A stretch of DNA of 64,000 nucleotides from Malacoraja senta. Taxonomy: Eukaryota. A model generated the notes under the pieces. The model saw only the letters and a list, made by a program, of their open reading frames with translations, did no database searches and was not told the origin of the DNA. Positions within the stretch are counted from its first letter, which is position 1. Each line of letters starts with the position of its first letter. Both the position numbers and the translations under genes were made by a program. This document shows, piece after piece, positions 8,564-57,000 of this stretch. The DNA lies in contig CM075981.1 in the NCBI GenBank assembly GCA_038087875.1, positions 2,480,001-2,544,000 of the forward strand, in the 5' to 3' direction.

Positions 8564-9091
8564 TCACTCTATTTTCAGCCAGGTCAATACATGACATTTC
8601 CCATGATGAGCAGTGGACCAAATGCAGGTATATGTCCCGGCATCTTTCTCTTTTACCCCCAACAGGAGCAACGAGGCGTCCCGATGCAAGAACACGTTGT
8701 CATTCACGAACTTCCAGTGGTGATAAGATCCCTGATATCCCACTGAAAACCCACTGTGATGCGGGGCAATGGCAACACCGTTTTTTTTCCATGTGACGAG
8801 GCTAGGTTCACTGTAATGCTTGGATATTTTACAGGGCAGCGTAACAGAACCACCCGGAGACACAACGACCACCTGCAGACTAATGATTAAAGGGTGATGA
8901 CCGGCATAACCTGGCTTGTCCATGCATCTTGGAAGCTGTTTATCGTTGACTTGCCGAGTCTTTCGTGCGTTCCACCCAGGCAAGTTTGCTTCCTCTCCCC
9001 ATTCTCTGGAGATCGGACCTGTTCCAGTTCCGGAGACTTGCCACACCATCTCCACAAGGACCATGAATCCTATCCATCTCTGCAGTCCCAT
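8564..9091 (-). CDS. U1: secreted single Ig V-domain preproprotein (175 aa), intact, subfamily A
   Basis: Signal-like MGLQRWIGFMVLVEMVWQVSG, propeptide ending RKTR, then V-set motifs TLPCK / W-KK / RDASLLL / DAGTYTC and a stop with no TM. A splice acceptor tttcacccacag|gaac lies 4 nt before the ATG. Confidence 0.85.
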   Translation of the reverse strand: MGLQRWIGFMVLVEMVWQVSGTGTGPISREWGEEANLPGWNARKTRQVNDKQLPRCMDKPGYAGHHPLIISLQVVVVSPGGSVTLPCKISKHYSEPSLVTWKKNGVAIAPHHSGFSVGYQGSYHHWKFVNDNVFLHRDASLLLLGVKEKDAGTYTCIWSTAHHGKCHVLTWLKIE

Positions 9092-9646
9092 GTTCCTGTG
9101 GGTGAAACAATGGGTCACCTTATTGTAACTCAGTAGGATTTATGATGACATTCCCATTACCTGCCCAGAGTTGGGGAACTAAGAACATCGGTTTAAGGTG
9201 AGGGGAGAAAGATTTAATGGGAAACTGAGGGGCGACTTTTTTACACAAAGGGAGGAGGGTGTTTGGAACGAGCTACCGGAAGAGTTAGTTGAGGCAGGTA
9301 CTATCACAATGATTAAGAAACAGTTAGACAGGTACATGGATAGGACAGGATTAGAGGGGTAAGGGCAAAAAGCAGGTAGGTGGGTCTAGATTTGATGGGA
9401 CAATTTGGTGGGCGTGGGCAAGTTGGGCCGAAGGTCTCGCTGTATGACTCCATCACTTGTCCCAGCCCGGTCATTCCTGCTTCTCCCTGGTCCTAGCAGA
9501 AGGTACAGAAGCTTGAAAGCTCACACCACCAGACTCAGGAACAGCTTCTTCCCCTCTGCTATCAGGCTTCTGAACTGGGGGATCAGTGTACAGAGACAAT
9601 CCCACCCCCATCACTCACAGACACTTGGATCCACAGGGGTGGTTAC

Positions 9647-9800
9647 CAGCTCCGGAGTCTCCACACAGGGTGACGGGGCTGGTCTTGTTCACATCTCCTG
9701 CCATCGCTCGCTCCTTTTATACCTACTCCCGGCTTCTCCTGACCCTCATTGCCTGCGCTCACGTACTTTCAACCAATCACTGTCTCCCACGGAGCATTGG
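9647..9800 (-). promoter_or_regulatory. U1 promoter + non-coding exon 1
   Basis: CCAAT (9796-9800, minus), inverted CCAAT (9773-9777), TATAAAAG (9714-9721), donor gctg|gtaacc at 9647/9646, intron 9646-9096. Confidence 0.75.
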
Positions 9801-10587
9801 CCGGTGTCAGCCGCGACCTCTCCACCCTCTGCCAAACGTGTCCTTGCATCAGCCATTAACGTTTAACAAGAACAACGCCATCCCAGCTGCCAGAGGCCAA
9901 CCAGGCGCCACACACATCCTGCTTGTGTCTCCACCACGTCTGGCCCAGCCACGCCACGTCACCACCGCAACCCTGGCACCTGCACTGTTTTCACAGTTTA
10001 TACTCAGCAGTGCAGGGAGCCAGTGTCACCTCTCCCCGATCAACCCCCTCAACCTGTAACCTACCCCCTGCCCACTGCTGGACAGCAGTTGGTGGAGCAG
10101 CTGTTCCACAAGTCACTGGTCAGGAGAGAGTTGAAGTGGGGGGGTGGTGACCACAGACAGAGAACATCGGTCGGCCCAGGACTGGGTTTGTCATGGCCCC
10201 AGTGAACCCCAGGGAGGAACAACAGTCGACTAATTTCAGAAATCAACTTTATTCAGAATAAAAAAGACACAACACAAACCGTGTGACAATAGACAATAGA
10301 CAATAGGTGCAGCAGCAGGCCATTTGGCCCTTCGAGCCAGCACCGCCATTCAATGTGATCATGGCTGATCATCCCCAATCAGTACCCCGTTCCTGCCTTC
10401 TCCCCATATCCCCTGACTATTTTTTACAGCTCTATCTAGCAGGTCTTTCTTGAAAGCATCCAGAGAACCGGCCTCCACTGCCCTCTGAGGCAGAGAATTC
10501 CAGTGTGAAAAGACTCTTCATCCAATCTCAGTGTGTACATTGAATAATGTCATACTCAGTAGTGTTTGCACTTGTCATTAAAGCAAC

Positions 10588-15297: not shown

Positions 15298-15868
15298 CTA
15301 CTTTCCGTGGGACGGTCTCAGCTGAATCATTGGGAGGTTGTCCTCTAATTTCAGCCAGGCCAATACATGACATTTCCCATGATGAGCAGTGGACCAAGTG
15401 CAGGTATATGTCCCGGCATCTTTCTCTTGTACCCCCCACAGGAGCAACGAGGCGTCCCGACGCATGAACACGTTGTCAATCATGAACTTCCAGCGGGGAA
15501 TAAGTTCCCTGATATCCCACTGAAAACCAACCGTGATATGTGGCAATGGCAACACCGTTTTTTTTTCCATGTGACGAGGATAGGTTTACTGTAATGCTGT
15601 GATATTTTACAGGGCAGCGTAACAGAACCACCCGGAGATACAACGACCACCTGCAGACTAATGATTAAAGGGTGATGACCGGCATAACCTGGCTTGTCCA
15701 TGCATCTTGGAAGCTGTTCATTGTTGACTTGCCGAGGCGCCCGAGCGTTCTCCCCGGGCAAGTTTGCTTCCTCTCCCCATTTTCTGGAGATCAGACCTGT
15801 TCCAGTTCCGGAGACTTGCCACACCATCTCCATAAGGACCATGATCCTATCCATCTCTGCAGTCTCAT
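15298..15868 (-). pseudogene. U2: frameshifted copy of the Ig V preproprotein gene (subfamily A)
   Basis: Relative to U1 there is a 1-nt deletion in the signal peptide (ggattcatg>ggatcatg), 9 vs 8 A in the WKKN run, a further +1 in the C''/D region, and the TGA stop is replaced by GAC. Confidence 0.85.
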
Positions 15869-15913
15869 GTTCCTGTGGGTGAAACAATGGGTTACCTTAT
15901 TGTAACTCAGTAG

Positions 15914-17370
15914 AAACATAGAAACATAGAAAATAGGTGCAGCAGTAGGCCATTCAGCCCTTCGAGCCTGCACCGCCATTCAATATGATCATGGCTGATC
16001 ATCCAACTCAGTATCCTGTACCTGCCTTCTCTCCATACCCCCTGATCCCTTTAGCCACAAGGGCCACATCTAACTCCCTCTTAAATATAGCCAATGAACT
16101 GGCCTCAACTACCTTCTGTGGCAGAGAATTCCACAGATTCACCACTGTCTGTGTGAAAAATGATTTTCTCATCTCGGTCCTAAAAGACTTCCCCCTTATC
16201 CTAAAACTGTGACCCCTTGTTCTGGACATCCCCAACATCGGGAACAATCTTCCTGCATCTAGCCTGTCCAACCCTTAAGAATCTTGTAAGTTTCTATAAG
16301 ATCCCCCCTCAATCTTCTAAATTCTAGCGAGTACAAGCCGAGTCTATCCAGTCTTTCTTCATATGAAAGTCCTGCCATCCTAGGAATCAGTCTGGTGAAC
16401 CTTCTCTGTGATCCCTCTATGGCAAGAATGTTTTTCCTCAGATTTGGTGACCAAAACTGTACGCAATACTCCAGGTGTGGCCTCACCAAGACCCTGTACC
16501 ACTGCAGTAGAACCTCCCTGCTCTTATACTCAAATCCCTTTTGCTGTGAATACCTTTCACTTTCTTCAATGCCTGCTGCACCTGCATGCCTATCTTTAAT
16601 GACTGGTGTACCATGACACCCAGATCTCGTTGCATCTCCCCTTTTCCTAATCGGCCACCATTCAGATAATAGTCTACTTTCCTGTTTGCCACCAAAGTGG
16701 ATAATCTCACATTTATCCACATTATACTGCATCTGCCATGCATTTGCCCACTCACCCAAACTATCCAAGTCACCTTGAAGCTCACAGCATCCTCCTCACA
16801 GCTAACACTGCCCCCAGCTTTGTGTCATCCGCAAACTTGGAGATGTTGCATTCAATTCCCTCATCCACATCATTAATATATATTATAAATAGCTGGGGTC
16901 CCAGCACTAAGCCTTGCGGTACCCCACTAGTCACTGCCTGCCATTCTGAAAAGGACCCGTTTATTCCAACTCTTTGCTTCCTGTCTGCCAGCCAGTTCTC
17001 TATCCACATCAATACTGAACCCCCAATATCGTGTGCTTTAAGTTTGCATACTAATCTCTTATGTGGGACCTTGTCGAAAGCCTTCTGAAAGTCCAGATAT
17101 AACACATCCACTGGTTCTCCCTTATCCACTCTACTACTTACATCCTCGAAAAATTCTATAAGATTCGTCAGACATGATTTACCTTTCATAAATCCATGCT
17201 GACTTTGTCCAATGATTTCACCACTTTCCAAATGTGCTGCTATCCCATCTTTAATAACTGACTCTAGCATTTTCCCCACTACCGATGTTAGACTAACTGG
17301 TCTGTAATTCCCCCTTTTCTCTCTCCCTCCCTTTTTAAAAAGTGGGGTTACATTAGCTACCCTCCAATCA
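15914..17370 (-). mobile_element. 5'-truncated CR1 LINE in the U2 intron
   Basis: RT motifs ([18 protein letters not shown]) with frameshifts, (tttctatg)n tail, and apparent TSD agtag. Confidence 0.95.
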
Positions 17371-17900
17371 AGTAGGATTCATGATGACATTCCCTGAACC
17401 CGCCCAAAGTTGGGGAACCAAGAACATCGGTTTAAGGCGAGGGGGGAAAGATTTAATGGGAAACTGAGGGGTGACTTTTTTACACAAAGTGTGGAGAGTG
17501 TTTGGAACGAGCTGCCGGGAGAGTTAGTTGAGGCAGGCACTATCACAATGATTAAGAAACAGTTAGACAGGTACATTGATAGGACAGGATTAGAGGGGTA
17601 AGGGCTAAAAGCAGGCAGGTGGAACTAGTTTTGATGGGACAAGTTGGTGGGCGTGGGCAAGTTGGGCCGAAGGTCTCGCTGTATGTCTCTAGGACTCCAT
17701 CACTTGTCCCACCCCGGTCATTCCTCCTTCTCCCTGGTCCTGTCTAGCAGAAAGTACAGAAGCTTGAAAGCGCACACCACCAGACTCAGGAACAGCTTCT
17801 TCCCCTCTGCTATCAGTCTTCTGAACTGCGGGAACAGTGAACAGAGACAATCCCACCCCCATCACTCACAGACACTTGAAGGATCCACAGGGGTGGTTAC

Positions 17901-18060
17901 CAGCTCCGGAGTCTCCAAACAGGGTGACGGGGCCGGTCTTGTTCACATCTCCTGCCATCGCTCGCTCCTTTTATACTTACTCCCGGCTTCTCCTGACCCT
18001 CATTGCCTGCGCTCACGTACTTTCAACCAATCACTGCCTCCCACGGAGCATTGGCCGGAG
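17901..18060 (-). promoter_or_regulatory. U2 promoter + non-coding exon 1
   Basis: TATAAAAG at 17968-17975, CCAAT boxes, donor gctg|gtaacc at 17901/17900. Confidence 0.7.
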
Positions 18061-18364
18061 TCAGCCGCGACCTCTCCACCCTCTGCCAAACGTGTCCTTG
18101 CATCAGCCGTTAACGTTTAACAACAACGTCATCCCAGCTGCCAGCGGCCAACCAGGCGCCCCACACATCCTGCTTGTGTCTCCACCACGTCTCGCTCTGG
18201 CCACCCACCCACTCCACTGTGATTGAGAAGACGATGGAACATAGAACATGGAACAGCGCAGCACAGGTAAAGGCCCTTCGGCCCACAATGTCCGTGCTGA
18301 ACATGATGTTGATCATGATGCCGAGAAGTTAAACTAATCACTTCAGCCTGCACGTAATCCACTA

Positions 18365-30619: not shown

Positions 30620-31132
30620 GACACACACTCACACACCCCCTCACACACACACACACACACACACCCTCACACACTCACCCCCTCACACACACACACACGC
30701 ACTCATACCCTCACACACACGCCCCCTCACACACACGCCCCCTCACACACACGCGCCCCCTCACACACACGCGCCCCCTCACACACACGCGCCCCCTCTC
30801 ACACACACGCGCCCCCTCTCACACACACGCGCCCCCTCTCACACACACAGCCCCCTCTCACACACACAGCCCCCTCTCACACACACAGCCCCCTCTCACA
30901 CACACAGCCCCCTCTCACACACACAGCCCCCTCTCACACACACAGCCCCCTCTCACACACACAGCCCCCTCTCACACACACAGCCCCCTCTCACACACAC
31001 GCCCCCTCTCACACACACGCCCCCTCTCACACACGCCCCCTCTCACACACGCCCCCTCTCACACACACGCCCCCTCTCACACACACGCCCCCTCTCACAC
31101 ACACGCCCCCTCTCACACACGCCCCCTCACCC
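30620..31132. repeat. CA-rich 17-19 bp minisatellite (cacacacagccccctctca)n
   Basis: Directly visible; its mirror is at 62805-63330. Confidence 0.95.
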
Positions 31133-34590: not shown

Positions 34591-36479
34591 ACATCTCCTT
34601 CCTAAAGGTACTTCCTTTTATTCTGAGGATGTGCCCTCTGGTCCTGGACTCCGTAAATAATGGAATCATCCTCTCCACATCCACTCTGTCCAGGCCTTTA
34701 ACTATTCGGTAAGTTTCAATGCGGTCCCCACCCCCTCATCCTTCAAAATTCCCCTCATCCTGATAAACAGTTTATCAATTAAAGTCAGCAATTTCAGTTG
34801 CTATGGATTGAATTAAATAACTGCTATTAGCCAAGTATGTATACATACAAGAAGTCCCTTGGTGCTTTGCTCGCAAGTCACAACACGATATACAGTTAAC
34901 AATTAGGAATGAAACATTACAATTTAACCATGTGAAGAATGACATAAAATACCAGAGCACAAGGAGGCTGCAGACTTCTGGTTGTTGAGTAGAGCTACTG
35001 CTCGTGGTTATGTCTGGTTCTGGCGGCTTTGACAGTCCGGAGTCGCCTTCCAGAGGGAAGGAACACATCAGTATGAATGTCACAGTCACATGCAGTTACT
35101 TACCTTTCAAGCTTTGCACAATCTTGTTTTCAGAGAGACACAGACCCGTTGTGTCCATGCCATCCATCAGCCATCCATTTACACTAATCCTACACTAATC
35201 TAGTCCAACTTTATTCTCTCTATATGGTTTTCAATTTCTCCCAGATTCCATCATTCACCTGCGGACAGGTTAAACTAATCTCCTCTGCCTGCATGTGATC
35301 CATATCCCTCCATCCATGTGCCAATATAATAGCCTCTTAAACACCACCATCGTGTCTGCCTCAACCACCACCCCTGGCAGCGCGTTCCAGGCTCCCACCA
35401 CCCACTGTGTATCCGCACAACTTTGCCCCTCTCACCTTAAAGATGTGCCCTCTAGTCCTTTACATTCCCACCCTGGGAAACTTGTTCTGATGATCTACTC
35501 GAACTGTCTGTCTGACGTCCTCTAGTAATTGGTATTTCTCTTCTGGTGAAAAGGTTCTGGCCGTTGTCACGGGTAGTCAGCACCCGTAGTCAGGATCGAA
35601 CCCGGGTCTCTGGCACTGTGAGGCAGCAACTCTACGTCTATGCTACCACTGTGCCACCCCAATACAAACTGGTGTCAAACAAACATTGTCGTTCACAGAG
35701 TGGTGCCCAGACTTGTCTCTGTGTGGTTGCTAGTCAGCTGCCGTTAATTACTAACGAGATTGTGGTCATCAAAGATGTCCCAACAGTTGACAACGTGCCC
35801 CACACATCCTTGTTGTGGCTCCAGCGAGTTACAGAACCATAGAAACATAGAAAATAGGTGGAGTAGTAGGTCATTTGGCCCTTCGAGCCAGCACCGCCAT
35901 TCAATATGATTATGGCTGATCATCCAAAATCAGTACCCCGTTCCTGCTTTCTCCCCATATCCCTTGATTCCATTAGCCCTAAGAGCTAAATCTAACTCTC
36001 TCTTGAAAACATCCAGTGAATTGGCCTCCACTGCCCTCTGTGGCAGAGAATTCCACAGATTCACAACTCTTTGGGTGACATTTTTTTTCCTCATCTCAGT
36101 CCTAAATGGCCTACCCCCATATTCTTAAACTGTGACCCTGGTTCTGAACTCCCCTTCGGAAGCCTTTGATAAAGTGCCACACGTGAGGCTGTTAAGGAAA
36201 ATGAGTGCCCACGGTATTAAAAAAATACAAAAATAGGTGGAGTCTGTGCAGGAGGACTTGGACAGGTTGGGAGAGGGGGCAGTGAGGGGGGGGGGGACCT
36301 CACTGAAACATACAGAATTGTGAAAGTCTTGGATAGAGTGGATGTGGGGAGGATGTTTCCACTGGTGGGAAAGTCTAGGACTAGAGGTCATAGCCTCAGA
36401 ATTAAAGGACGTTTTTGTAGGAAGGAGATGATGCTGTGATAGGATGAATGCATGGTCAAGGGACAGTAGCTATAGACAA

Positions 36480-37050
36480 ACAATAGACAATAGACAATAG
36501 GTGCAGGAGTAGGCCATTTGGCCCTTCGAGCCAGCATCGCCATTCAATATGATCATGGCTGCTCATCCCCAATCAGTACCCCGTTCCTGCCTTCTCCCCA
36601 TATCCCCTGACTCCGCTATTTTTAAGAACTCTATCTAGCTCTCTCTTGAAAGCATCCAGAGAACCGGCCTCCACCACCCTCTGACGCAGAGAATTCCACA
36701 GACTCACCAGTCTCTGTGAGAAAAAGTGTTTCCTCATCTCCGTTCTAAATTGCTTACTCCTTATTCTTAAACTGTGGCCCCTGGTTCTGGACTCCCCCAA
36801 CATCGGGAACATGTTTCCTGCCTCTAGCGTGTCCAAACCCTTAACAATCTTATATGTTTCAATGAGATCCTCCCATCCTTCTAAACTCCAGAGTGTACAA
36901 GCCCAGCCGCTCCATTCTCTCAGCATATGACAGTCCCGCCATCCCGGGAATTAACCTTGTAAACCTACGCTGCACTCCCTCAATAGCAAGAATGTCCTTC
37001 CACAAATTAGGGGACCAAAACTGTACACAATACTCCAGGTGTGGTCTCAG
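36480..37050 (-). mobile_element. CR1 3' fragment (mirror at ~57175-57750, +)
   Basis: CR1 C-terminal peptide and (ctattgt)n tail. Confidence 0.9.
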
Positions 37051-37222
37051 GTCAGGGGCAAGGTCAGGGGCAAGTCAGCACAACCACCCCATAATGTCTG
37101 TCATTGTAAACGTGACACACTTAGGTCAACACCAAATTTAGGAACAGCATTTTATTTTGTAGTCACTGAAATCATCATGCTCCTGTCCCTTGGAAGGGCT
37201 TGTGTTGAATCAGTGGGAGGTT

Positions 37223-37787
37223 TCACTGCACTGTCAGCTTGGTGTTCAGTTTACACGGCTCGTTATTAACCAGCCAAGCGCACAAATATTTCCCAGCATC
37301 TTCCTCTTCCAGCCCCGTCAGGACCAACGAGGCGTCCCGTGTCTCATCCACTTTTGTTTTCATGAATTTCCAGCGTCCGGGTGACCCTGGATATTGCGCA
37401 CCGTTCCTGTCAGTAAACACGGCGATCGTATCTTTTCCTTTCGTCCACAGCACCACAAATTTATCGGCTCCACCGTCTTCTTTGGGCATTTTGCAGGATA
37501 GCTGAGCAGAACTCGAAGGGCCGAATGGCCTACTCCTGCACCTATTTTCTATGTTTCTAACCACCCTTACTGGCCGTCACCTCCGTCCATCTCATCTTCT
37601 CTGGAGCGAGGTTAACACCGCATTGTGGAGTTGGATCTTCATTGACTTGCCGAGACGCCCGTGCGTTCCACCCGGGCAAGTTTGCTTCCTCTCCCCATTC
37701 TCTGGAGATCAGACCTGTTCCAGTTCCGGAGACTTGCCACACCATCTCCACAAGGACCATGAATCCTATCCATCTCTGCAGTCCCAT
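37223..37787 (-). pseudogene. U3: Ig V preproprotein gene (subfamily B) disrupted by a 49-nt CR1-tail insertion
   Basis: The prepro (RASR) and V domain (SAQLSCK...WTKG...RDASLVL...DAGKYLC) are intact on either side of the insertion at 37510-37558, which creates a TAG stop. Confidence 0.88.
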
Positions 37788-38366
37788 GTTCCTGTGGGTG
37801 AAACAATGGGTCACCTTATTGCAACTCAGTAGGATTCATGATGACATTCCCTGAACCCGCCCAGAGTTGGGGAATCAAGAACCAGAGGACATCAGTTTAA
37901 GGTGAGGGGGGGAAAGATTTAATGGGAAACTGAGGGGTGACTTTTTTACACAAAGGGTGGAGGTTGTTTGGAACGAGCTGCCGGGAGAGGTAGTTGAGGC
38001 AGGTACTATCACAATGATTAAGAAACAGTTAGACAGGTACATTGATAGGACAAGATTAGAGGGGTAAGGGCCAAAAGCAGGCAGGTGGAACTAGTTTTGA
38101 TGGGACAAGTTGGTGGGCGAGGGCAAGTTGGGCCAAAGGTTTCGCTGTATGACTCTATGACTCCATCACTTGTCCCACCCCGGTCATTCCTCCTTCTCCC
38201 TGGTCCTGTCTAGCAGAAGGTACAGAAGCTTGAAAGCTCACACCACCAGACTCAGGAACAGCTTCTTCCCCTCTGCTATCAGGCTTCTGAACTGGGGGAA
38301 CAGTGAACAGAGACAATCCCACCCCCATCACTCACAGACACTTGAAGGATCCACAGGGGTGGTTAC

Positions 38367-38525
38367 CAGCTCCGGAGTCTCAACACAGGGTGACGGGGCC
38401 GGTCTTGTTCACATCTCCTGCCATCGCTCGCTCCTTTTATACCTACTCCCGGCTTCTCCTGACCCTCATTGCCTGCGCTCACGTACTTTCAACCAATCAC
38501 TGCCTCCCACGGAGCGTTGGCCGGA
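38367..38525 (-). promoter_or_regulatory. U3 promoter + non-coding exon 1
   Basis: TATAAAAG at 38434-38441; donor at 38367/38366. Confidence 0.7.
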
Positions 38526-38799
38526 GTCAGCCACGACCTCTCCACCCTCTGCCAAACGTGTCCTTGCATCAGCCGTTAACGTTTAACAAGAACAACGCCA
38601 TCCCAGCTGCCAGCGGCCAACCAGGCGGCCACACATAGCACTGGAAGGCAGCAACACTCCCGCTGCGCCACTGTGCCGCCCTTGCATTGGCCTCTTGCAC
38701 AAGTTATAAAAGTATGAGGTCCAGATAGGGTAGACAGTCAGAACCAATTTTCCATGGTGAAAATGCCAAGGACGTCAGGGTGAAAAAGGAAAAAAATTA

Positions 38800-39330: not shown

Positions 39331-40865
39331 ATCCATGTACCTGACTCACTGTTTCTTAAACATTGGGATCTAAATGTGGCCTCACCAACGTCTTCTACAG
39401 CTGCAAGATGATCTCCCAACCTCCATACTCAATACTGCGACTGCATCTTCAAGGAACCATGTACCTTCAATCATAGATCCCTCTGCTCTACAACATTCCC
39501 CAGAGCTGGACTATTCACTGTGTAGGTACTGCACATGTTAGACTCCCCAAAACACAACACCTCACATTATTCTGTATTAAATTCCGTCAACCGTTCCTCA
39601 GCCCACCTGGCCAATATCTCTCTTTTTTTTTTTAATCACTATTTAAAAAAAAAAATTATTAGAAGCAATTGTACGAAGATAAAACATTCGGCATCTAAAA
39701 TTATACAATTATTGTACAATCATTTTTAACCTTATAACCTATATTATGAAAATGAAAAAAAGGAAAGAAAGAGAAAGCAAGAAAAGGAAGAAGTAAAAAG
39801 TGAAAAGATAAACAGGAGAAAGTCCCCTAAACTACCAAAGCAGTGTGGTAGAAAGATAGTGGAATGAAAAAAAGAAAAATGGAGATATACCTTGCCCCTC
39901 GCCCCCCCCCCACCCCCCCCCCCCGCCCCTCCCCCACCCCTGCCTCACCCAACCTAGCATCGGATTTAAATTTAAATTTGTGTTTCACCATACTATTATT
40001 GTCAAGATCCTACTGCAATTTTTCACAACCATCTCCACTATCTGCGAAACCGCCTACTTTAGTATCATCTGCCTTTACTTTTGTTCCTGTTTTGTTCCTG
40101 ACAACATTCCCCTTTACTTTTGTTCCTGTTCTCAACATCTGCAGACTCCTGATTTTCCACATGTTGTTCCGTCCCCGTGTGGTCATGCCCAATGATGGAC
40201 ACAGCTCATAGAACCCGGCGATGTTGCCCGTAGTGAGCAAGAGTTGCACAAAGTTCACACCCAACTCTTCTTCTTCTTGCGTATGGCGTGCACAGCCTAA
40301 AGTTGTTGTACAACTTGTTCTATTTGATCTTATTTGATTGTGCACGCCAGGTTGATTGCATTCGTCGAAACAGGGCGGACCACGTGAAGGTTGCAATCTC
40401 CCACCCCACACCCAACTCAATGCTGGTGTACAAAGAATCACTCACACCGGCTGCATTCAAGAGAGTTTATTTCCATTAATGGTACATTTACCGATGCAAG
40501 CAGGGGCTGTTCCATTCCACTACATTCGCCCCATACCCCCCTAAACCTTTCCCTGTACCAAGTGTGTATTAAATATTGTTACAGTTCTATAAACCCAGTG
40601 AAAATGTTGCCCCTCAGGTTCCTATTAAATCTTGCCCCTCTCACCTTAAACTTATGTCCCTGGTTCTTGATTCCCGTACCCCGGGTAAAAGATGCTTTGT
40701 GTTCAGCCCTCTATTCCCCTCATCAGTGACTACAATCTAAAATGCTGTTGTTGGCCTAAGTGTGTCAAGTTTATAATGAGGGATGTTCTTGTGTGTTTGT
40801 GCTGTCCTGCCACTGCCTGTTGCTCCTGTCACTTGGAGGGGCCTGTGCTGAATCAGTGGGAGGTT

Positions 40866-41381
40866 TCACTTCACTGCAAGCTTGATATTTAGTCTACATT
40901 CCCCTTGGCTAGTGAACCAAGCGCAGGAATATATCCCAATATCACTCTCTTGTACACCCATGATTACCAACGAGGCATCCCGTGTCCCAGCCACATCTGT
41001 TTTCATGAACTCCCAGCGGCTGACACCCCCTGGATAGGTTGCACCTTTCCCTACAGTAAACACGCCCAGTGTCCCCTTCCCTTTAGTCCAGCTGACCACA
41101 AAATGCGTGGGTCCAGCCTTCCCTGTGGGTACTTTACAGGGTAGCGTAGCAGAACCACCCTTGCGTGCCGTCATCTCCGTCCATTTCGTCTTTTTCACAG
41201 TTGGATTAACACCGCATTCTGGAGTTTCTTGTTTGTTGACTTGTCGAGGCTCCCGTGCGTTCCACCCGGGCAAGTTTGCTTCCTCTCCCCATTCCCTGGA
41301 GATCGGACCTGTTCCAGTTCCGGAGACTTGCCACACCATCTCCACAAGGACCATGAATCCTATCCATCTCTGCAGTCCCAT
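40866..41381 (-). CDS. U4: secreted single Ig V-domain preproprotein (171 aa), intact, subfamily B
   Basis: Same signal and propeptide (REPR), V motifs ATLPCK / VSWTK / RDASLVI / DIGIYSC, then a stop. Acceptor cccacag|gaac precedes the ATG. Confidence 0.85.
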   Translation of the reverse strand: MGLQRWIGFMVLVEMVWQVSGTGTGPISREWGEEANLPGWNAREPRQVNKQETPECGVNPTVKKTKWTEMTARKGGSATLPCKVPTGKAGPTHFVVSWTKGKGTLGVFTVGKGATYPGGVSRWEFMKTDVAGTRDASLVIMGVQESDIGIYSCAWFTSQGECRLNIKLAVK

Positions 41382-41435
41382 GTTCCTGTGGGTGAAACAA
41401 TGGGTCACCTTATTGCAACTCAGTAGGATTCATGA

Positions 41436-42933
41436 ATCTTTAGATTCTGGAGTAGTTCCTGAGGATTGGAAGGTAGCAAACGTAACCCCACTTTTTAAGA
41501 AGGGAGGGAGAGAGAAAACGGGGAATTACAGACCAGTTAGTCTAACATCGGTAGTGGGGAAACTGCTAGAGTCACTTATTAAAGATGGGATAGCAGCACA
41601 TTTGGAAAGTGGTGAAATCATTGGACAAAGTCAGCATGGATTTACGAAAGGTAAATCATGTCTGCCGAATCTTATAGAATTTTTCGAGGATGTAACTAGT
41701 AGAGTGGATAGGGGAGGACCAGTGGATGTGTTGTATCTGGACTTTCAGAAGGCTTTCGACAAGATACCACATAAGAGATTAGTATACAAACTTAAAGCAC
41801 ACGATATTGGGGGTTCAGTATTGATGTGGATAGGGAACTGGCTGGCAGACAGGAAGCAAAGAGTAGGAGTAAACGGGTCCTTTTCACAATGGCAGGCAGT
41901 GACTAGTGGGGTACCGCAAGGCTCAGTGCTGGGACCCCAGCTATTTACAATTTATATTAATGAACTGGATGAGGGAATTGAAGGCAACATCTCCAAGTTT
42001 GCGGATGACACTAAGCTGGGGGGCAGTGTTAGCTGTGAGGAGGATGCTAGGAGACTGCAAGGTGACTTGGATAGGCTGGGTGAGTGGGCAAATGTTTGGC
42101 AGATGCAGTATAATGTGGATAAATGTGAGGTTATCCACTTTGGTGGCAAAAACAGGAAAGCAGACTATTATCTAAATGGTGGCCGATTAGGAAATGGGGA
42201 GATGCAGCGAGACCTGGGTGTCATGGTACACCAGTCATTGAAAGTAGGCATGCAGGTGCAGCAGGCAGTGAAGAAAGCGAATGGTATGTTAGCTTTCATA
42301 GCAAAAGGATTTGAGTATAGGAGCAGGGAGGTTCTACTGCAGTTGTACAGGGTCTTGGTGAGACCACACCTAGAGTATTGCGTACAGTTTTGGTCTCCAA
42401 ATCTGAGGAAGGACATTATAGCCATAGAGGGAGTGCAGAGAAGGTTCACCAGACTGATTCCTGGGATGTCAGGACTTTCATATGCAGAAAGACTGGATAG
42501 ACTTGGCTTATACTCGCTAGAATTTAGGAGATTGAGAGGGGATCTTATAGAAACGTACAACATTTTTATGGGGTTGGACAGGCTAGATGCAAGAAGATTG
42601 TTCCCGATGTTGGGGAAGTCCAGGACAAGGGGTCACAGCTTAAGGATAAGGGTGAAATCCTTTAAGACCGAGATGAGGAAAAACTTTTTCACACAGAGAG
42701 TGGTGAATCTCTGGAACTCTCTGCCACAGAGGGTAGTTGAGGCCAGTTCATTGGCTATATTTAAGAGGGAGTTAGATGTGGCCCTTGTGGCTAAGGGGAT
42801 CAGGGGGTATGGAGAGAAGGCAGGTACAGGATACTGAGTTGGATGATCAGCCATGATCATATTGAATGGCGGTGCAGGCTCGAAGGGCCGAATGGCCTAC
42901 TCCTGCACCTATTTTCTATGTATCTATGTATCT
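41436..42933 (+). mobile_element. 5'-truncated young CR1 LINE in the U4 intron; RT frame open to its stop at 42837
   Basis: Uninterrupted RT C-terminal frame ([25 protein letters not shown]), (tatctatg)n tail, and apparent TSD atga. Confidence 0.95.
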
Positions 42934-43505
42934 ATGATGACATTCTCTGAAGCTGCTGCCACCACACTGGGCAATGTCGCTGTGCAGCTTCTTCAGTTCC
43001 CGCCTGGTTTATTTTAAGTTGCTTTGACCTGTCATGGACCAACAACATTGAAGTGGCAGCCAAGGAGGCACACCGATGCATCTACTTCCCCGGAGATCGA
43101 GGAAATATTGCAAGTCTCCAATGTCTCTTAGAATCTTCTACAGATGCACCATGGAGTGCAGACTGTGGGGTTGCATCACAACTAGGTTTGGGAACAGCTC
43201 TGAGCCCAAGACCACAAGAAATTGCAGAGAGTTGTGGATGGAGCCCAGTCCATCACACAGAACACACTCCCCACCAGTGACTCCATCTACAACCCAAAAA
43301 ATCAAAGACTTGTCCCACCCCGGTCATTCCTCCTTCTCCCTGGTCCTGTCTAGCAGAAGGTACAGAAGCTTGAAAGCGCGCACCACCAGACTCAGGAACA
43401 GCTTCTTCCCCTCTGCTATCAGGCTTCTGAACTGCGGGAACAGTGAACAGAGACAATCCCACCCCATCACTCACAGACACTTGAAGGATCCACAGGGGTG
43501 GTTAC

Positions 43506-43665
43506 CAGCTCCAGAGTCTCCACACAGGGTGTCGGGGCCGGTCTTGTTCATATCTCCTGCCATCGCTCGCTCCTTTTATACCTACTCCCGGCTTCTCCTG
43601 ACCCTCATTGCCTGCGCTCACGTACTTTCAACCAATCACTGCCTCCCACGGAGCGTTGGCCGGAG
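43506..43665 (-). promoter_or_regulatory. U4 promoter + non-coding exon 1
   Basis: TATAAAAG at 43573-43580; donor gctg|gtaacc at 43506/43505. Confidence 0.7.
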
Positions 43666-44164
43666 TCAGCCGCGACCTCTCCACCCTCTGCCAAACGTGT
43701 CCTTGCATCAGCCGTTGACGTTTAACAAGAACGACGCCATCCCAGCTGCCAGCGGCCAACCAGGCGCCCCACACATCCTGCTTGTGTCTCCACCACGTCT
43801 GGCCCAGCCACGCCCTGGCACCTGCGCTGGTTTCACAGTTTATACTCAATATGAGCCGGCGGTGCGGTGGGATTGGTCGTAGCTGAATCCGGCCTATGCC
43901 CCGTGGGAGGCAGTGATTGGATCAATACTTCCTTCCCAACAACCATCAGGCTCTTGAACACGACACGACTCTGAGCTCAACGATGAACGTCTATAGACTG
44001 TCTTTGGTTGTACAAAGGATGTTGGCTTTACACACTATTGTATTGGGCTCTCTCATTTACTGAATCCTTTTGCTTTTTACATATTATATCCGTGTGGTTT
44101 ATTGTGTAAAAGGCTCCTCAACACAGGACACTTTCCAGTCATGGTTTTCCTTCCTTTTCCCCAG

Positions 44165-44298: not shown

Positions 44299-46539
44299 TT
44301 CAATTATTATTTGCATCCCAAGTTTAACAGGTCTGAGCAGCAAAGTTGTGTCATGGAGTTGCCTTTAGCTGAGTTGAGTCGAGTTGACTTGAGTTGACTT
44401 GAGTTTACTTTAGATTTGTTTAGAGCGATCGCCCGTACACAAGTTCTAACCTACACACAAGGGACAATTTACTGAAGCCAATTAACCTACAAACCTGCAC
44501 ATCTTCGAAATCTGTCAGGAAACTGTAGCACCCGGAGGAAACCCACACGGTCATAGGGACAACTTACAACCTCCGTACAGACAGTACCCACAGTCAGCAT
44601 TGAACCCGGGTCTCTGGCGCTGTAAGGCAGCAACTCTACTGCTGCATCACTGAGCCTCCCTTACATTGGCCTCTTGCACTGTTGGGGCTGCTGATTAGAG
44701 TCCAGTTTTGATCCTCATTGGGAGTGTGCAGAAACATAGAAACATAGAAAATTGGTGCAGGAGTAAGCCATTCGGCCCTTCGAGCCAGCACCGCCATTCA
44801 ATATGATCATCGCTGAACATCCTAAATCAGTACCCCGTTCCTGCTTTCTCCCCATATCCCTTGATTCCGTTAGCACTAAGAGCTAAATCTAACTCTCTCT
44901 TGAGAACATCCAGTGAATTGGCCTCCACTACCTTCTGTGGCAGAGAATTCCACAGATTCACAACTCTCTGGGTGAAAAGGTTTTATTCATCTCAGTCCTA
45001 AATGGCCGACCCCTTATTCTTAAACTGTGACCCCTTGGTTCCCCCAACATCGGGAACATTTTTCCTGCATCTATCTAGTCTGTCCAATCCTTTAAGAATT
45101 TTATATGTTTTTATAAGTTCCAGTCTCATCCTAAATTCCAGTGAATACAAGCAGTCGAGCCATTCTTTCATCATATGTCAGTCCCGCCATCCTGGGAATT
45201 AACCTGGTGAACCTACGTTGCACTCCTTCAATAGCAAGAATGCCCTTCCTCAAAATGACAGTGGAGGGCTGCCACTACAGAGACATCCAATAGACCTGAT
45301 AGAATGATATAGAATTATGAGAGGCGTAGATAGCGGAATTAACCAGAAGCAATTTCCCAAAAGCTTTTCCCAAAGGAGAGGGTTCAGAAGCGGTTTCCCA
45401 AAATGATGCCGGGATTGGAGGTTGTTAGTTATAAAGACAGGTTGGATAGTCTCGGATTGTATTCTCTAGAACTTCAGATGTTGAGGGGAGACCTGACAGA
45501 AGGTTATAAAATTATGAGAGCCAGATAGGGGAGACAGTCAGAACCAATTTCGCAGGGTGGAAATGCCAAAGACTAGAGGGCATCGCTTTAGGGTAGGATG
45601 CTTTCAAGAGAGAGTTAGATAGAGCTCTTAAAGATAGCGGAGTCAAGGGATATGGGGAGAAGGCAGGAATGGGGTACCGATTGTGGATGATCAGCCATGA
45701 TCACAGTGAATGGCGGTGCTGGCTCGAAGGGCCGAATGGGCAACTACTGCGCATATTATTTATTGTCTATTGTCTATTGTCTATTGAGATAGGAAAAATG
45801 TTAAGATGGGCGGGTCACAGAGGGTATTGGGTGCCTGGAACCCGCTGCTGTGGGTGGTGGTGGCAGATACAATAGTTAAGAGTCTTTATCTAAAAAATCT
45901 CATGAATATGCAGGGAATGGAGGATTATGGATCACAGAGGAGATTAGCTTAACATGGCATCATGTTCAGCACGGACCTTGTGGGCCGAAGGGCCTGTTCC
46001 TGTGCTGTACTGTTCCATGTTCTATGTTACATAGTCTTCTCAATCACATCTTGAGAAGAACATTTTCCAGAGGTGCCCTGGTACCACCAGTGGGACATTC
46101 ATTGTACCTGCTGCAGCCAATGAGTGTGTTGTGTATACAGCCAGAGGAGAAGAGGAGATTTATGTGGAGTTTCATTTTGTAATCATTATTTATTTAATGT
46201 CATAGTGTAATAGAGTCATAGTGATACAGCGTGGAAACAGGCCCTTCGGCCCAACTTGCCCACACTGGCCAACATGTCCCAGCTACACTAGTCCCACCTG
46301 TTGGCCATATCCCTCCAAATCTGACCTATACCTGTTCCTGCCTAACTGTTTCTTAAACGTTGGGATAGTTTCTGCCTCAACTGCGATGGTTGACCAGAGC
46401 CAGACGTGGTGGAGACACAAGCAGGATGTGTGGGGCGCCTGGTTGGCCGCTGGCAGCTGGGATGACGTTGTTCTTGTTAAACGTTAACAGCTGATGCAAG
46501 GACACGTTTGGCAGAGGGTGGAGAGGTCGTGGCTGACTC

Positions 46540-46696
46540 CGGCCATTGCTCCGTGGGAGGCAGTGATTGGTTGAAAGTACATGAGCGCAGCCAATGAGGG
46601 TCAGGAGAAGCCGGGAGTAGGTATAAAAGGAGCGAGCGATGGCAGGAGATGTGAACAAGACCGGCCCCGTCACCCTGTGTGGAGACTCCGGAGCTG
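46540..46696 (+). promoter_or_regulatory. U5 promoter + non-coding exon 1
   Basis: gattgg, ccaat (46591), TATAAAAG at 46622-46629, donor gctg|gtaacc at 46696/46697, intron 46697-47271. Confidence 0.75.
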
Positions 46697-47275
46697 GTAA
46701 CCACCCCTGTGGATCCTTCAAGTGTCTGTGAGTGATGGGGGTGGGATTGTCTCTGTTCACTGTTCCCGCAGTTCAGAAGCCTGATAGCAGAGGGGAAGAA
46801 GCTGTTCCTGAGTCTGGTGGTGTGAGCTTTCAAGCTTCTGTACCTTCTGCCAGACAGGACCAGGGAGAAGGAGGAATGACCGGGGTGGGACAAGTGATGG
46901 AGTCATAGAGACATACAGCGAGACCTTTGGCCCAACTTGCCCGCGCCCACCAACTTGTCCCATCAAATCTAGTTCCACCTGCCTGCTTTTGGCTCTTACC
47001 CCTCTAATCCTGTCCTATCAATGTACCTGTCTAACTGTTTCTTAATCATTGTGATAGTACCTGCCTCAACTACCACTTCCGGCAGCTCGTTCCAAACAAC
47101 CTCCACCCTTTGTGTAAAAAAGTCACCCCTCAGTTTCCAATTAAATCTTTCCTCCCCTCACCTTAAACCGATGTCCTCTGATTCTCGATTCCCCAACTCT
47201 GGGCGGGTTCAGGGAATGTCATCATGAATCCTACTGAGTTGCAATAAGGTGACCCATTGTTTCAACCACAGGAAC

Positions 47276-47806
47276 ATGGGATTGCAGAGATGGATAGAAT
47301 TCATGGTCCTTGTGGAGATGGTGTGGCAAGTCTCCGGAACGAGAACAGGTCCGATCTCCAGAAAATGGGGAGAGGAAGCAAACTTGCACGGGTGGAACGC
47401 ACGGGCACCTCGGCAAGTCAACGATAAACAGCTTCCAAGATGCATGCACAAGCCAGGTTCTGACAGTGATCACCTTCCATCGATTTGCGAGCATTTGTTC
47501 TTTGCATCTCCGGGTGAATCTTTTACGCTGCCCTGTAAAATATCCGCGGATTACAAACAACCCTCGTTACTTCAGTGGAAAAAAAACGGTGTTCCCATTG
47601 CCAATTTTGATGATAAAACGTTTCAGAAATATATGGGATCTGATGTCAGCTGGAAATTCGTGGATCCAGAAGCCCTTTGGGGGAAACGGGACGGCTCGTT
47701 GCTCCTGACAGGCATAAAAGAGAAAGATGAGGGGATATATTCATGTGTTTGGTTCATTGATTCTCATGCGGTATGTGAAGAATTTGCCCGGCTGACAATC
47801 AAGTGA
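47276..47806 (+). CDS. U5: secreted single Ig V-domain preproprotein (176 aa), intact, subfamily A
   Basis: Signal plus propeptide (RAPR), FTLPCK / QWKK / RDGSLLL / DEGIYSC, then a stop. Acceptor caaccacag|gaac precedes the ATG. Confidence 0.85.
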   Translation: MGLQRWIEFMVLVEMVWQVSGTRTGPISRKWGEEANLHGWNARAPRQVNDKQLPRCMHKPGSDSDHLPSICEHLFFASPGESFTLPCKISADYKQPSLLQWKKNGVPIANFDDKTFQKYMGSDVSWKFVDPEALWGKRDGSLLLTGIKEKDEGIYSCVWFIDSHAVCEEFARLTIK

Positions 47807-49287
47807 AACCTCCCACTGATTCAGCAAGGCCCGTCCCAGGGTCAGTAGCAAAGTCTAGTCTAGTTTAGTTTAGTTCAAAGGTACAGCAGGGAAACAGGCC
47901 CTTCGGCCCACAGAGCCAACGGGGACCAGTGATCACCCCATACACTAGTTCTATCCCACACACTGGGTACAATTTACACTGTCTCTGGGATGTGGGACGT
48001 ACAAACTCAGTACAGACATCACCCGGGGAATAGAGAAGGTGAATGCACAGTTTTTTGCCCAGAGTGTGGGAATCAAGAACCAGGGGACATAAGTTTAACG
48101 TTAGAGGGGCAAATTTTTGAAAGGAACCTGTGGGGCAACTTTTTCACTCGGGGGGGGGGGGAGGGTATGGAACGAGCTGCCAGAGGAGGTAGTTGAGGCA
48201 GGTACTACAACGACATAATGGACACTTGGGTAGGTCGATGGATAGGAATGGTTTTATGGGGATATGGGCCAAATGTAACGAAATAGGACTACCTTAGATG
48301 GGGTATATGGGTCTTCATGGGCAATGTAGATTGGCTATTTCCTACTAGCCAATTATAGTGGTTGATAGTAGTGACTCCGCCTAATATGCGGTTTATATTA
48401 TCAAGAGCTTGCCTACGCTAGTTAGTACTAGTAGCTGCTAGGAACTGTAATGTCCTGCAGATTTATGCTGCGAGTAGATTTAATAAACATGTGTTGATCT
48501 TGATATGTGTTCGACTCAGCTCATTACATGGTGTCAGAGAGTGAATCTTGCCCACCATGTCATGTTTATCGGGTTTAAAAAATATATATAGTTTATGTGT
48601 CTACTATATCCATCATGGCAAATTCTTGTCGCCTTCCTAGTCCTCTGATCTTTGACTCTGACATTGCTGAAATGCTGGCGTCTTATCGAGCGTGATTACA
48701 CTCATTATGCTCGCATCGTTCATCGCAACGACCCCCCCCCACCCCGATGTGCGTGCTTCTGTATTGTTCAACTTAGCTGGACCTGAAGCTATGAATCGTG
48801 CCGACAATTTCACATTTGAGCCTGCTGTTCTGGATGCTAATGGTCAGGTCCTGGTGCCTGCTGAGACGATTGACGACCCTGCTGTCTTATTTGCAAAGTT
48901 GATACTGGCGCAAAATGCAATGTCATCTCGTTATCAGAGTTTAAAAAAAATTGTTATGCTGAATGTATTGAAAAGGCCTCGGCCAAGCTTCAGGCTTATG
49001 AGGGGGATGTTCTACACCCTCTTGGACAAACTGATTTAAAGTGCACCATAGACGAGCAGACTCGTACCTTAAAGTTTTATAGTGTTAAGGGGGATTCAGA
49101 GACTTTGCTCGGTATCAATGCATGCCTCGATCTAGTCCTGGTATACTTTGGCTGCGCCGTCCATCAACACTTTCTCGCTGATGGACCCACTCAACAGGTA
49201 CTCTCTCAATACAAAGATCTGTTTAACGACAAGCTTGGCAAGTTGCTTATCATACACCACATTGTTGTCGATCCCAACGTAACCATA

Positions 49288-54452: not shown

Positions 54453-55914
54453 GATGGTCTCAGACCCGACCCACAAGTGATGGTCTCAGACCCGACCCAT
54501 CAAAAACTGCACCTATCAACGAAATGCCGGTTCCTGCTGACGTCGTGAGCCTACAAAGGTTCCTTGGAATGGTCAACTACCGGGGGAAATCTATTCCCAA
54601 CCTCAGCGACATATCTGCCCCCCTGCGGGAACTGACACACAAAGACGTTGCATGGTCCTGGTATCCGCAGCACCAAAGAGCTTTTGATGCTCTCAAATTG
54701 CAGCTGGCTCGTGCACCTACTCTCGCCTATTTTGCTTTGGAGTTACCAGTAACGCTCACCTGCGATGCGTCCCAGTATGGACTTGGCGCAGCATGCCTGC
54801 AGTCCACTCCCGATGGCGACTGCAAGCCCGTTTCTTACGCCTCTCGCACAGTAACTGACACTGAACAACGTTACGCTCACATCGAAAAAGAATTGCTCGC
54901 AGTGGTTTTCGCCTGGAAAGTCTGTGACTAGAGAAACTGACCACCAGCCGCTGGTCACTATTTTGAACAAACCCATCCACGCTGCCTCAGCACGACTACA
55001 GCGAATGATGATGCAACTGCAGCGATTTGATTTCAACATGGTCTATAAGAAATGCAAGGACATGCACATAGCTGATACGCTATCAAGAGCCCCACGCAAA
55101 ACCAACAAACAACAACTCTCTGAACAGGACCAGTTCTCAGTAAGGAAGGTATCGTATGTTCCTACTGATTGCCTGAGCAGCCTAGTAGAAAACACGGCTG
55201 CTGATGAGACTTTACAATTGCTGTCTGCAGTCATCCGGCGTGGCTGGCCGGATAAACAACACAACACCCCCGCTCGCAACCCGCCCATACTTCCTGGTTC
55301 ACGTGCAGGCAGTGGAGATTAGTTTAAGTTGGCATCATGTTCAGCATGGACCTTGTGGGCCGAAGGGCCTGTTCCTGTGCTGTACTGTTCCATGTTCTAT
55401 GTTACATAGTCTTCTCAATCACATCTTGAGAAGAACATTTTCCAGAGGTGCCCTGGTACCACCAGTGTGACATTCATTGTACCTGCTGCAGCCAATGAGT
55501 GTGTTGTGTATACAGCCAGAGGAGAAGAGGAGATTTATGTGGAGTTTCATTTTGTAATCATTATTTATTTAATGTCATAGTGTAATAGAGTCATAGTGAT
55601 ACAGCGTGGAAACAGGCCCTTCAGCCCAACTTGCCCACACTGGCCAACATGTCCCAGCTACACTAATCCCACCTGTTGGTCCATATCCCTCCAAATCTGA
55701 CCTATACCTGTTCCTGTCTAACTGTTTCTTAAACGTTGGGATAGTTTCTGCCTCAACTGCGATGGTTGACCAGAGCCAGACGTGGTGGAGACACAAGCAG
55801 GATGTGTGGGGCGCCTGGTTGGCCGCTGGCAGCTGGGATGGCGTTGTTCTTGTTAAACGTTAACGGCTGATGCAAGGACACGTTTGGCAGAGGGTGGAGA
55901 GGTCGCGGCTGACT

Positions 55915-56072
55915 CCGGCCAATGCTCCGTGGGAGGCAGTGATTGGTTGAAAGTACGGGAGCGCAGGCAATGAGGGTCAGGAGAAGCCGGGAGTAGGTAT
56001 AAAAGGAGCAAGCGATGGCAGGAGATGTGAACAAGACCGGCCCCGTCACCCTGTGTGGAGACTCCGGAGCTG
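55915..56072 (+). promoter_or_regulatory. U6 promoter + non-coding exon 1
   Basis: ggccaatg, gattgg, TATAAAAG at 55998-56005, donor at 56072/56073, intron 56073-56431. Confidence 0.72.
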
Positions 56073-56435
56073 GTAACCACCCCCTGTGGATCCTTCAAGT
56101 GTCTGTGAGTGATGGGGGTGGGATTGTCTCTGTTCACTGTTCCCCCAGTTCAGAAGCCTGATAGCAGAGGGGAAGAAGCTGTTCCTGAGTCTGGTGGTGT
56201 GAGCTTTCAAGCTTCTGTACCTTCTGCTAGACAGGACCAGGGAGAAGGAGGAATGACCGGGGTGGGACAAGTGATGGAGTCCTAGAGTCATACAGCGAGA
56301 CCTTCGGCCCAACTTGCCCGCGCCCACCAAATGTCCTCTGGTTCTCGATTCCCCAACTCTGGGCGGGTTCAGGGAATGTCATCATGAATCCTACTGAGTT
56401 GCAATAAGGTGACCCATTGTTTCACCCACAGGAAC

Positions 56436-57000
56436 ATGGGACTGCAGAGATGGATAGGATTCATGGTCCTTGTGGAGATGGTGTGGCAAGTCTCCGGAAC
56501 TGGAACAGGTCCGATCTCCAGAGAATGGGGAGAGGAAGCAAACTTGCCCGGGTGGAACGCACGGGCGCCTCGGCAAGTCAATGAAGATCCAACTCCACAA
56601 TGCGGTGTTAACCTCGCTCCAGAGAAGATGAGATGGACGGAGGTGACGGCCAGTAAGGGTGGTTAGAAACATAGAAAATAGGTGCAGGAGTAGGCCATTC
56701 GGCCCTTCGAGTTCTGCTCAGCTATCCTGCAAAATGCCCAAAGAAGACGGTGGAGCCGATAAATTTGTGGTGCTGTGGATGAAAGGAAAAGATACGATGG
56801 CCGTGTTTACTGACAGGAACGGTGCGCAATATCCAGGGTCACCCGGACGCTGGAAGTTCATGAAAACAAACGTGGATGAGACACGGGACGCCTCGTTGGT
56901 CCTGACGGGGCTGGAAGAGGAAGATGCTGGGAAATATTCCTGCGCTTGGCTGGTTAATAACGTGCCGTGTAAACTGAACACCAAGCTGACAGTGCAGTGA
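56436..57000 (+). pseudogene. U6: Ig V preproprotein gene (subfamily B) with the same 49-nt CR1-tail insertion as U3
   Basis: The insertion at 56665-56713 creates a TAG; the remaining frame is intact to the TGA at 57000. Confidence 0.88.

Follow-up and report, generated by a model that had tools for sequence, protein, structure and literature searches.

Gene clusters in which a 5' module and the coding body behind it have independent histories have been described in placental mammals, where a 5' element of the BEX/WEX/GASP genes is kept alike within species by repeated gene conversion, resulting in evolutionary chimaeras (Winter and Ponting 2005, PMC1274310). Here, we analyzed a 64,000-nt stretch of the genome of the skate Malacoraja senta (assembly GCA_038087875.1, contig CM075981.1, positions 2,480,001 to 2,544,000 of the forward strand; the whole stretch is called the window below). 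It carries six clustered units of one gene type, each encoding a hydrophobic leader and a single immunoglobulin (Ig) V-set domain, and it shows a comparable separation between the history of the front module and that of the coding body. The shared element of BEX/WEX/GASP is a motif in the 5' untranslated region (UTR), found even across unrelated protein families, whereas the skate block is about 1 kb long, comprises promoter, intron and 49 codons, and ends inside a coding exon of homologous V-domain genes. We consider it highly probable that this block has undergone concerted evolution, most likely by interlocus gene conversion that is halted by the divergence of the V domains.

Conotoxins and the mussel peptides of the MgCRP-I family (PMC4558851) resemble the skate genes in another way: they have a conserved signal/pro region in front of a variable mature part, are organized as a tandem multigene family and show a high ratio of nonsynonymous to synonymous divergence (dN/dS) in the mature part. 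Their mature products are short cysteine-rich peptides, whereas the mature part of the skate genes is an Ig V domain of 122-127 residues whose lineages are old. In conotoxin-type peptides, the signal, pro and mature parts usually lie on separate exons, and the prepro region is conserved across species. A preliminary description of this DNA had likened the skate genes to conotoxin and amphibian skin-peptide precursors. The likeness holds for the layout, but not for the conserved block itself, which in the skate takes in the promoter, an intron and neutral DNA, is species-specific and ends inside an exon. A third relevant system is the shark UrIg2 gene, in which repeated constant-domain exons group by species and not by position, a pattern attributed to gene conversion (PMC12227049). 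In UrIg2 the converted sequences are C-domain exons within one gene, whereas in the skate conversion would act on separate genes, in their non-Ig front part, and leave the Ig domain out.

Self-comparison of the window revealed three intact genes (U1, U4 and U5) and three pseudogenes (U2, U3 and U6), whose coordinates are collected in Table 1. Every unit follows the same plan, with a TATA-type promoter, a short exon 1, an intron that is largely repeat-derived, and one long exon coding for the hydrophobic leader, a segment of about 28 residues that ends in R-x-x-R followed by Q-V-N, and one V-set domain. The shared 5' cassette consists of the promoter, exon 1, the transposable element (TE)-derived intron and codons 1-49, and it is present in all six units. 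A well-supported tree divides the V domains into four lineages, namely A1 (U1 and U2), A2 (U5), B1 (U3 and U6) and B2 (U4), with a protein identity of only 31-55% between lineages in the window. The interval 40866-43815, where the preliminary description had located a cassette with its V domain, is correct and corresponds to U4 on the minus strand. A mobile-element origin of the cassette was considered and rejected: there are only six occurrences, and in all of them it is fused in frame to V at the same codon.

The cassettes are nearly identical regardless of the V domain that they precede. All 15 pairs of units share 94.4-97.8% identity over 670-1,010 aligned sites, and among about 1,000 cassette sites none is diagnostic for subfamily A (U1, U2 and U5) versus subfamily B (U3, U4 and U6). 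In U4, whose cassette is split by an insert in the intron, the upstream part is 96-98% identical to its counterpart in the other five units, and the downstream part shows 93-97% nucleotide identity to all of them. The comparison of U1 and U4, from which the preliminary description had started, bears out its account closely: 47 of the first 49 residues are identical (the differences being K44E and T45P), and the near-identity extends over the promoter (96.4%, 252 sites), exon 1 (95.9%), the alignable intron ends (95.8%, 213 sites) and the prepro codons (95.9%). After R-Q-V-N the similarity collapses to a nucleotide difference of 0.454, and the two V domains are identical at 31.7% of 120 aligned positions, close to the third that had been estimated by hand.

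The contrast in depth between the two parts of each unit is large. Non-coding cassette distances lie between 0.020 and 0.055 for all pairs, and synonymous divergence (dS) in V is 0.28 between A1 and A2, about 0.5 between B1 and B2, and 0.63-0.92 between A and B. Under selection alone, as the preliminary description had pointed out, dS should be equal and the histories congruent across the segments. Instead, synonymous sites of V have diverged 5-30 times as far as the intron and promoter next to it (Fisher p 3e-7 to 8e-29). Both selection alone and fast V evolution are refuted as explanations of the pattern.

The transition between the two parts is sharp and occurs at nearly the same place in different pairs. 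In every comparison between lineages, maximum likelihood places one change point at -19 to +37 nt from the end of the R-Q-V-N codons, with twice the log-likelihood difference (2dLL) ranging from 150 to 337; in U1/U4 it lies 19 nt before that end (2dLL 285). The switch point coincides with the start of the folded domain. No such step is present in the whole-unit duplicates U1/U2 (direct) and U3/U6 (inverted), which are plain recent duplicates with equally low divergence in cassette, V and flank. Pairs of A1 and A2 remain highly identical for about 37 nt further into the exon, and thus the edge tracks local similarity and not a fixed signal.

At the 3' end, the earlier claim that similarity resumes exactly at the stop codon holds only in part. 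A 21-nt island lies at the stop (40849-40869 in U4); its sequence is the same in U3, U4, U5 and U6, and U1 departs from it at one position. The window contains five matches at no more than one mismatch, where 0 would be expected, and the island can also be read in the U2 pseudogene and in the read-through tail of the Leucoraja protein P0006. Beyond it there is only a weak, V-lineage-specific similarity of about 25-45 nt, and no constant 3' flank comparable to the 5' cassette was found. The proposal that V cassettes have been swapped between constant flanks is not supported by this 3' end, where the similarity is confined to these 21 nt and a weak tail that follows the V lineage. A 3' UTR element is one possible role of the island. 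The gene models of homologues all stop there, with P0006 reading through a lost stop. A role as splice donor to further exons is unlikely, given that the donor (GTGAAA) would be weak and in phase 2, not the phase 1 typical of Ig exons.

Comparison with other species separated the two histories further. Close protein relatives were limited to single-domain proteins, as yet uncharacterised, from Leucoraja erinacea and Rhinoraja longicauda and to a protein of the electric ray Narcine bancroftii that is named nectin-1-like at NCBI. In a V tree containing these proteins, U1 and U2 group with Leucoraja P0006 (98/96), U3 and U6 with Leucoraja P0003 (93/93), and U4 with Leucoraja P0001/P0002 (78/87). 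Species monophyly of the six window V units is rejected, at a cost of 278 log-likelihood units (approximately unbiased test, p-AU 7e-47). V orthologues are 69-92% identical (69% for U4-P0001, 91-92% for lineage B1), as against 31-55% for paralogues.

For the cassette, the comparison between species was carried out on 80 residues of exon 1 and leader, the window units being translated conceptually in the reading frame that the Leucoraja models use. At three positions, a fixed difference separates all six window units from all six Leucoraja paralogues; one of the three lies at -1 relative to the predicted site of signal cleavage. Pairs of V orthologues differ at 5-15 of the 80 residues (10 for U1-P0006, 9 for U3-P0003), and several cross-lineage pairs within one species differ at only 0-4 (4 for U1-U3, 0 for P0001-P0004, 1 for P0003-P0007). 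Between species, cassette identity is 87-94%; in lineage B1 it is about 89-92%, like that of its V domain. Since V orthologues are no more diverged than the between-species cassette, V is not hypermutating and the cassette is not unusually constrained. On the evidence of these protein comparisons, the V lineages predate the split of Malacoraja senta and Leucoraja, and the cassette is homogenised within each genome.

In the mechanism that we propose, non-reciprocal copying among the units, possibly together with some unequal exchange, would repeatedly homogenise the block of about 1 kb and would operate across both orientations. Copying needs homology, so that tracts would begin in the shared block and end where V is too different to pair, inside exon 2 around R-x-x-R/Q-V-N. 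Selection for distinct V domains, or against the loss of V diversity, may sharpen this edge. In the end, many different V domains would share a single module for expression and secretion, with a possible benefit from co-regulation. We infer conversion rather than crossover as the mode of exchange. Of the two explanations put forward in the preliminary description, it is the homogenisation of an expression/secretion module with V spared that agrees with the data: the intron is as homogenised as the leader, V is trans-specific and the cassette carries species-fixed differences. Exchange is also suggested by the distribution of variants within the cassette. The plus-strand units U5 and U6 are as close to U2-U4 as U2-U4 are among themselves. 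Among pairs of informative cassette sites, 26 of 45 fail the four-gamete test, for which recurrent mutation is also a possible cause, and all three quartet splits of U1, U2, U3 and U5 are backed by some sites. The upstream ends of the shared block vary by pair, extending about 460 nt further in U5-U6 and 45 nt further in U1-U4. In addition, derived leader states cross the V subfamilies, as seen in a three-residue haplotype of Leucoraja P0003, P0006 and P0007 and in a P-to-L change shared by U2 and U3.

Several results weigh against repeated conversion or limit its reach. A GENECONV-like run-length permutation test found no significant inter-lineage tract after correction for multiple pairs; pairwise p was 0.0015-0.08 for several inter-lineage pairs and global p about 1, in a test that is weakened by the many private changes. 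The cassette tree is a star with no supported internal branch, and the V topology is not rejected for it (p-AU 0.29), so that the window alone shows a difference in depth and not a conflict in topology. The comparison between species involves protein models only, with its 80 residues and three fixed sites. Base composition gives no clear sign of biased conversion: the GC content is 0.58 in promoter and exon 1, 0.50 in the intron, 0.44-0.52 in V and 0.48 in the window, and private cassette changes comprise 46 from GC to AT versus 15 from AT to GC. Homogenisation may also have been episodic rather than continuous, with the last episode roughly 1-3% divergence ago.

A stronger form of the conversion hypothesis holds that the shared cassette is a selected device and more than a side effect of homology, in which one expression/secretion module is kept on old trans-species V lineages and the tracts are held at the domain edge by selection. 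The module would combine the ER-stress-type and HNF1-like promoter elements with a shared signal peptide and a pro-segment that can be cleaved. We put this forward tentatively, as a reading that is rather unlikely. If true, it would imply a germline-encoded repertoire of secreted single-V proteins, all of them made in the same cells, in response to one stimulus, and processed in the same way. Such a repertoire would amount to an innate equivalent, without rearrangement, of a shared leader and constant module.

Among the alternatives to concerted evolution, the one that survives best is a one-off chimaera, in which unequal crossing-over or segmental duplication placed one cassette in front of existing V exons once or a few times, followed by drift. 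The star-like cassette tree, the excess of private over shared cassette variants (about 80 versus about 21) and the lack of a globally significant single tract in the run-length test are all in keeping with it. However, the units lie in both orientations, and a crossover between inverted copies inverts the DNA but does not spread a cassette. Drift from a single founding event also fits poorly with the derived leader states that cross V lineages in both species, the site pairs that fail the four-gamete test, and the upstream ends of the shared block that differ between pairs. Taken together, we regard this scenario as improbable.

It is far less likely still that the units are recent duplicates whose V domains have raced ahead through positive selection or targeted mutation. 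The layout, which is like that of precursors with a conserved prepro region and a hypervariable mature part, and the high dN/dS over the whole of V (0.7-1.5 between lineages, 2.06 for U1-U2) would suit such a history, but the excess of synonymous divergence in V over the adjacent non-coding DNA does not, nor do the Leucoraja orthologues and the rejected species monophyly. Moreover, the truly recent duplicates, U1/U2 and U3/U6, are equally diverged in cassette, V and flank. The window genes gave no indication of a recent acceleration of the mature part of the conotoxin type, as V dS (0.28-0.92) is far above the flank distance (0.02-0.055) and V is trans-specific.

An equally slight chance is left to purifying selection acting alone, that is, to promoters and leaders kept alike without any exchange of sequence. 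Such constraint is to be expected for a leader that has to work in secretion, and two promoter motifs, of the endoplasmic reticulum (ER)-stress response element (ERSE) type and HNF1-like, are indeed kept in all six promoters. Yet the intron is 93.9-98.6% identical between units and the leader codons, slightly less conserved, 91.8-98.6%. A repeat-derived intron as similar as the coding leader means that protein constraint does not explain the similarity of the cassettes; elsewhere in the window, members of this repeat family show a likeness of only about 75%. The pseudogenes retain the same cassette identity as the intact genes, and three positions are fixed differently across all paralogues of the two species. 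An assembly artefact, in which collapsed or mis-joined repeats produce a false 5' near-identity, is the least credible explanation of all: the window is interrupted by two gaps (31133-32111 and 62335-62804) and does hold large duplications, inverted as well as direct, but each cassette has private substitutions (2-29 per unit), indels and distinct TE insertions, and the Leucoraja gene models show the same pattern independently.

The genes probably encode small, secreted proteins with a single V-set domain of the nectin/CAR type. Pfam V-set scores are 39.1 bits for U4, 30.1 for U1 and 28.0 for U5 (cut-off 26), and the V sequence matches the first domain (D1) of PVR (CD155) with E 8e-6. In the AlphaFold model, the predicted local distance difference test (pLDDT) score is 80-91 over residues ~70-171 and below 50 over residues 1-50. 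A Foldseek search with the predicted beta-sandwich returned CAR, nectin-1/2, PVR and JAML at E 1e-7 to 1e-9. The likeness to the D1 V-set domains of nectin, PVR and CAR therefore extends over the sequence and the predicted fold of the mature domain. In contrast to these receptors, the skate proteins have no further Ig domains, transmembrane segment or cytoplasmic tail, and they have an extra cysteine pair and an R-x-x-R pro-segment. In U1, U4 and U5, the open reading frame (ORF) ends straight after the G strand, and the two C-type Ig domains, transmembrane segment and tail of the nectin architecture are absent. The Leucoraja and Rhinoraja models (175-221 aa) likewise have a single domain. A profile search against 1.84 billion representatives returned, besides the family's own representative, one single-domain relative (Narcine P0053), the rest being multi-Ig proteins, and a literature search returned nothing on this skate family.

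The G strand of V is germline-encoded. Recombination signals 3' of V were also searched for: the 23-spacer pattern was matched only at the duplicated U3/U6 site, with 3 mismatches; by chance, 0.85 matches would be expected, and two or more turned up in 20 of 100 shuffles. The 12-spacer pattern occurred at chance level. The 3' island was rejected as a relic of such a signal, both for these chance-level matches and because its conserved part would be the spacer and not the heptamer.

With regard to expression, a CCAAT-N9-CCACG element, which we take to be the ER-stress response consensus, is kept in all six promoters including those of the pseudogenes, where 0.13 occurrences are expected by chance. 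Together with the HNF1-like palindrome, it suggests expression in secretory, liver- or gut-type tissue. A seventh perfect CCAAT-N9-CCACG lies at 43902-43920 on the minus strand, about 270 nt upstream of the regular element of U4 and in opposite orientation. Around it, 46 nt repeat part of the promoter in inverted orientation at 87-89% identity, an arrangement seen at U4 only.

Two start codons come into question. In the intact genes, as in all six Leucoraja models, the ATG of exon 1 (43563-43561 in U4) shares the frame of the main ORF; that frame is open in U1 (with an in-frame 3-nt deletion), U4 and U5 and broken in U3 (stop) and U6 (frameshift). The NCBI models of Leucoraja start at this ATG, resulting in an N-terminal extension of 31 residues before the hydrophobic leader, and the Rhinoraja model begins at the methionine equivalent to 41381. 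Only some 18 nt separate the exon 1 ATG from the beginning of the TATA element; at this distance, transcription is expected to begin downstream of 43563, and translation is predicted to start from 41381. The exon 1 donor was placed with the help of the Leucoraja gene models, which read through ...KCL and then NMGLQRW across the junction. The predicted signal peptide covers about 21 residues, and cleavage is likewise predicted behind the conserved R-x-x-R; secretion and removal of the pro-segment are inferred. The x-x pair of R-x-x-R varies among copies (KT, EP, AP and AS), and the Narcine relative lacks the P4 arginine.

Table 1. Positions in the window of the six units, of the parts of U4 and of the promoter elements
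Feature	Positions	Strand	Description
U1	8564..10006	-	intact, 175 aa, lineage A1; cassette 10006-8945, V 8944-8567, stop 8566-8564
U2	15340..18207	-	pseudogene, lineage A1, tandem duplicate of U1; cassette 18207-17371 + 15913-15723; intron LINE 15907-17369
U3	37223..38636	-	pseudogene, lineage B1; cassette 38636-37641, V 37640-37226
U4	stop 40868-40866 to cassette start ~43803-43848	-	intact, 171 aa, lineage B2
U4 stop and 3' island	40849..40868	-	stop 40868-40866; matching sites 8547-8566, 37206-37225, 47804-47823, 56998-57017
U4 V-set domain	40869..41234	-	122 codons, lineage B2
U4 cassette, downstream part	41235..41435	-	3' end of intron (acceptor AG 41387-41386), exon 2 start 41385, ATG 41381, codons 1-49
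U4-specific intron insert	41436..43307	+	5'-truncated LINE 41464-42937 and other repeat-derived DNA; takes the place of ~330 nt of the family intron
U4 cassette, upstream part	43308..43848	-	promoter, exon 1 (ends 43475), first ~165 nt of intron (donor GT 43474)
U4 promoter motifs	43714-43726; 43632-43650; 43573-43580	-	HNF1-like palindrome; ERSE-type CCAAT-N9-CCACG; TATA
U5	46399..47806	+	intact, 176 aa, lineage A2, head-to-head with U4; cassette 46399-47422, V 47423-47803
U6	55775..57000	+	pseudogene, lineage B1, inverted duplicate of U3 with the same 49-nt insertion; cassette 55775-56582, V 56583-56997
CCAAT-N9-CCACG, all six promoters	9773-9791, 18027-18045, 38493-38511, 43632-43650, 46552-46570, 55928-55946		
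HNF1-like palindrome, all six promoters	9855-9867, 18109-18121, 38575-38587, 43714-43726, 46476-46488, 55852-55864		

The pseudogenes differ in their defects. U2 has three frameshifts, two of them within V, and has lost its stop codon. The cassette of U6 has an intron deletion of about 210 nt. In U3, V is broken by a 49-nt insertion that leads to a premature stop after codon 76. This insertion (37512-37560 in U3, 56664-56711 in U6) is 97.9% identical to the 3' tail (42879-42926) of the long interspersed nuclear element (LINE) in the U4 intron, and thus represents an extremely 5'-truncated LINE insertion that is older than the inverted duplication.

The LINE in the U4 intron contains a reverse transcriptase (Pfam RVT_1, E 2.9e-32) and is antisense to the gene. 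It is 92.9% identical to the independent copy in the U2 intron, which has the opposite orientation. Both landed independently, within about 35-80 nt of the acceptor of exon 2, pointing in opposite directions with respect to the gene, and the 3' end of the family intron seems to be a repeated landing site for LINE insertion. Another LINE, at 51450-52894 on the minus strand, has an endonuclease domain and a GDSL-lipase-like ORF1, as in elements of the CR1/L2 type. The inverted duplication 29946-37892 / 56331-64000 brackets the region from U3 to U6, with arms of about 8 kb that are 96-99.7% identical; each arm enters an assembly gap flanked by tandem-repeat arrays (30588-31130 and 62805-63358). 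Apart from this, the DNA separating the units derives from repeats, with no further host gene recognised, and an Rfam scan of the window matched no family.

In summary, this locus is a case of textbook-type partial concerted evolution in an unstudied gene family, and a clean natural one, in which the proposed conversion breaks off within an exon, where a disordered leader gives way to a folded domain. Beside a front end that is homogenised and species-specific, the old V lineages have remained distinct. This has consequences for annotation and phylogeny: trees or orthology calls based on the leader, promoter or intron would mislead, and only V tracks the history of the genes. So far the family carries only LOC numbers in Leucoraja and Rhinoraja and the label nectin-1-like in Narcine. 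It would be a tractable case of a germline-encoded secreted V set with a common regulatory module, and it bears on how Ig-superfamily repertoires are organized outside the rearranging receptors.

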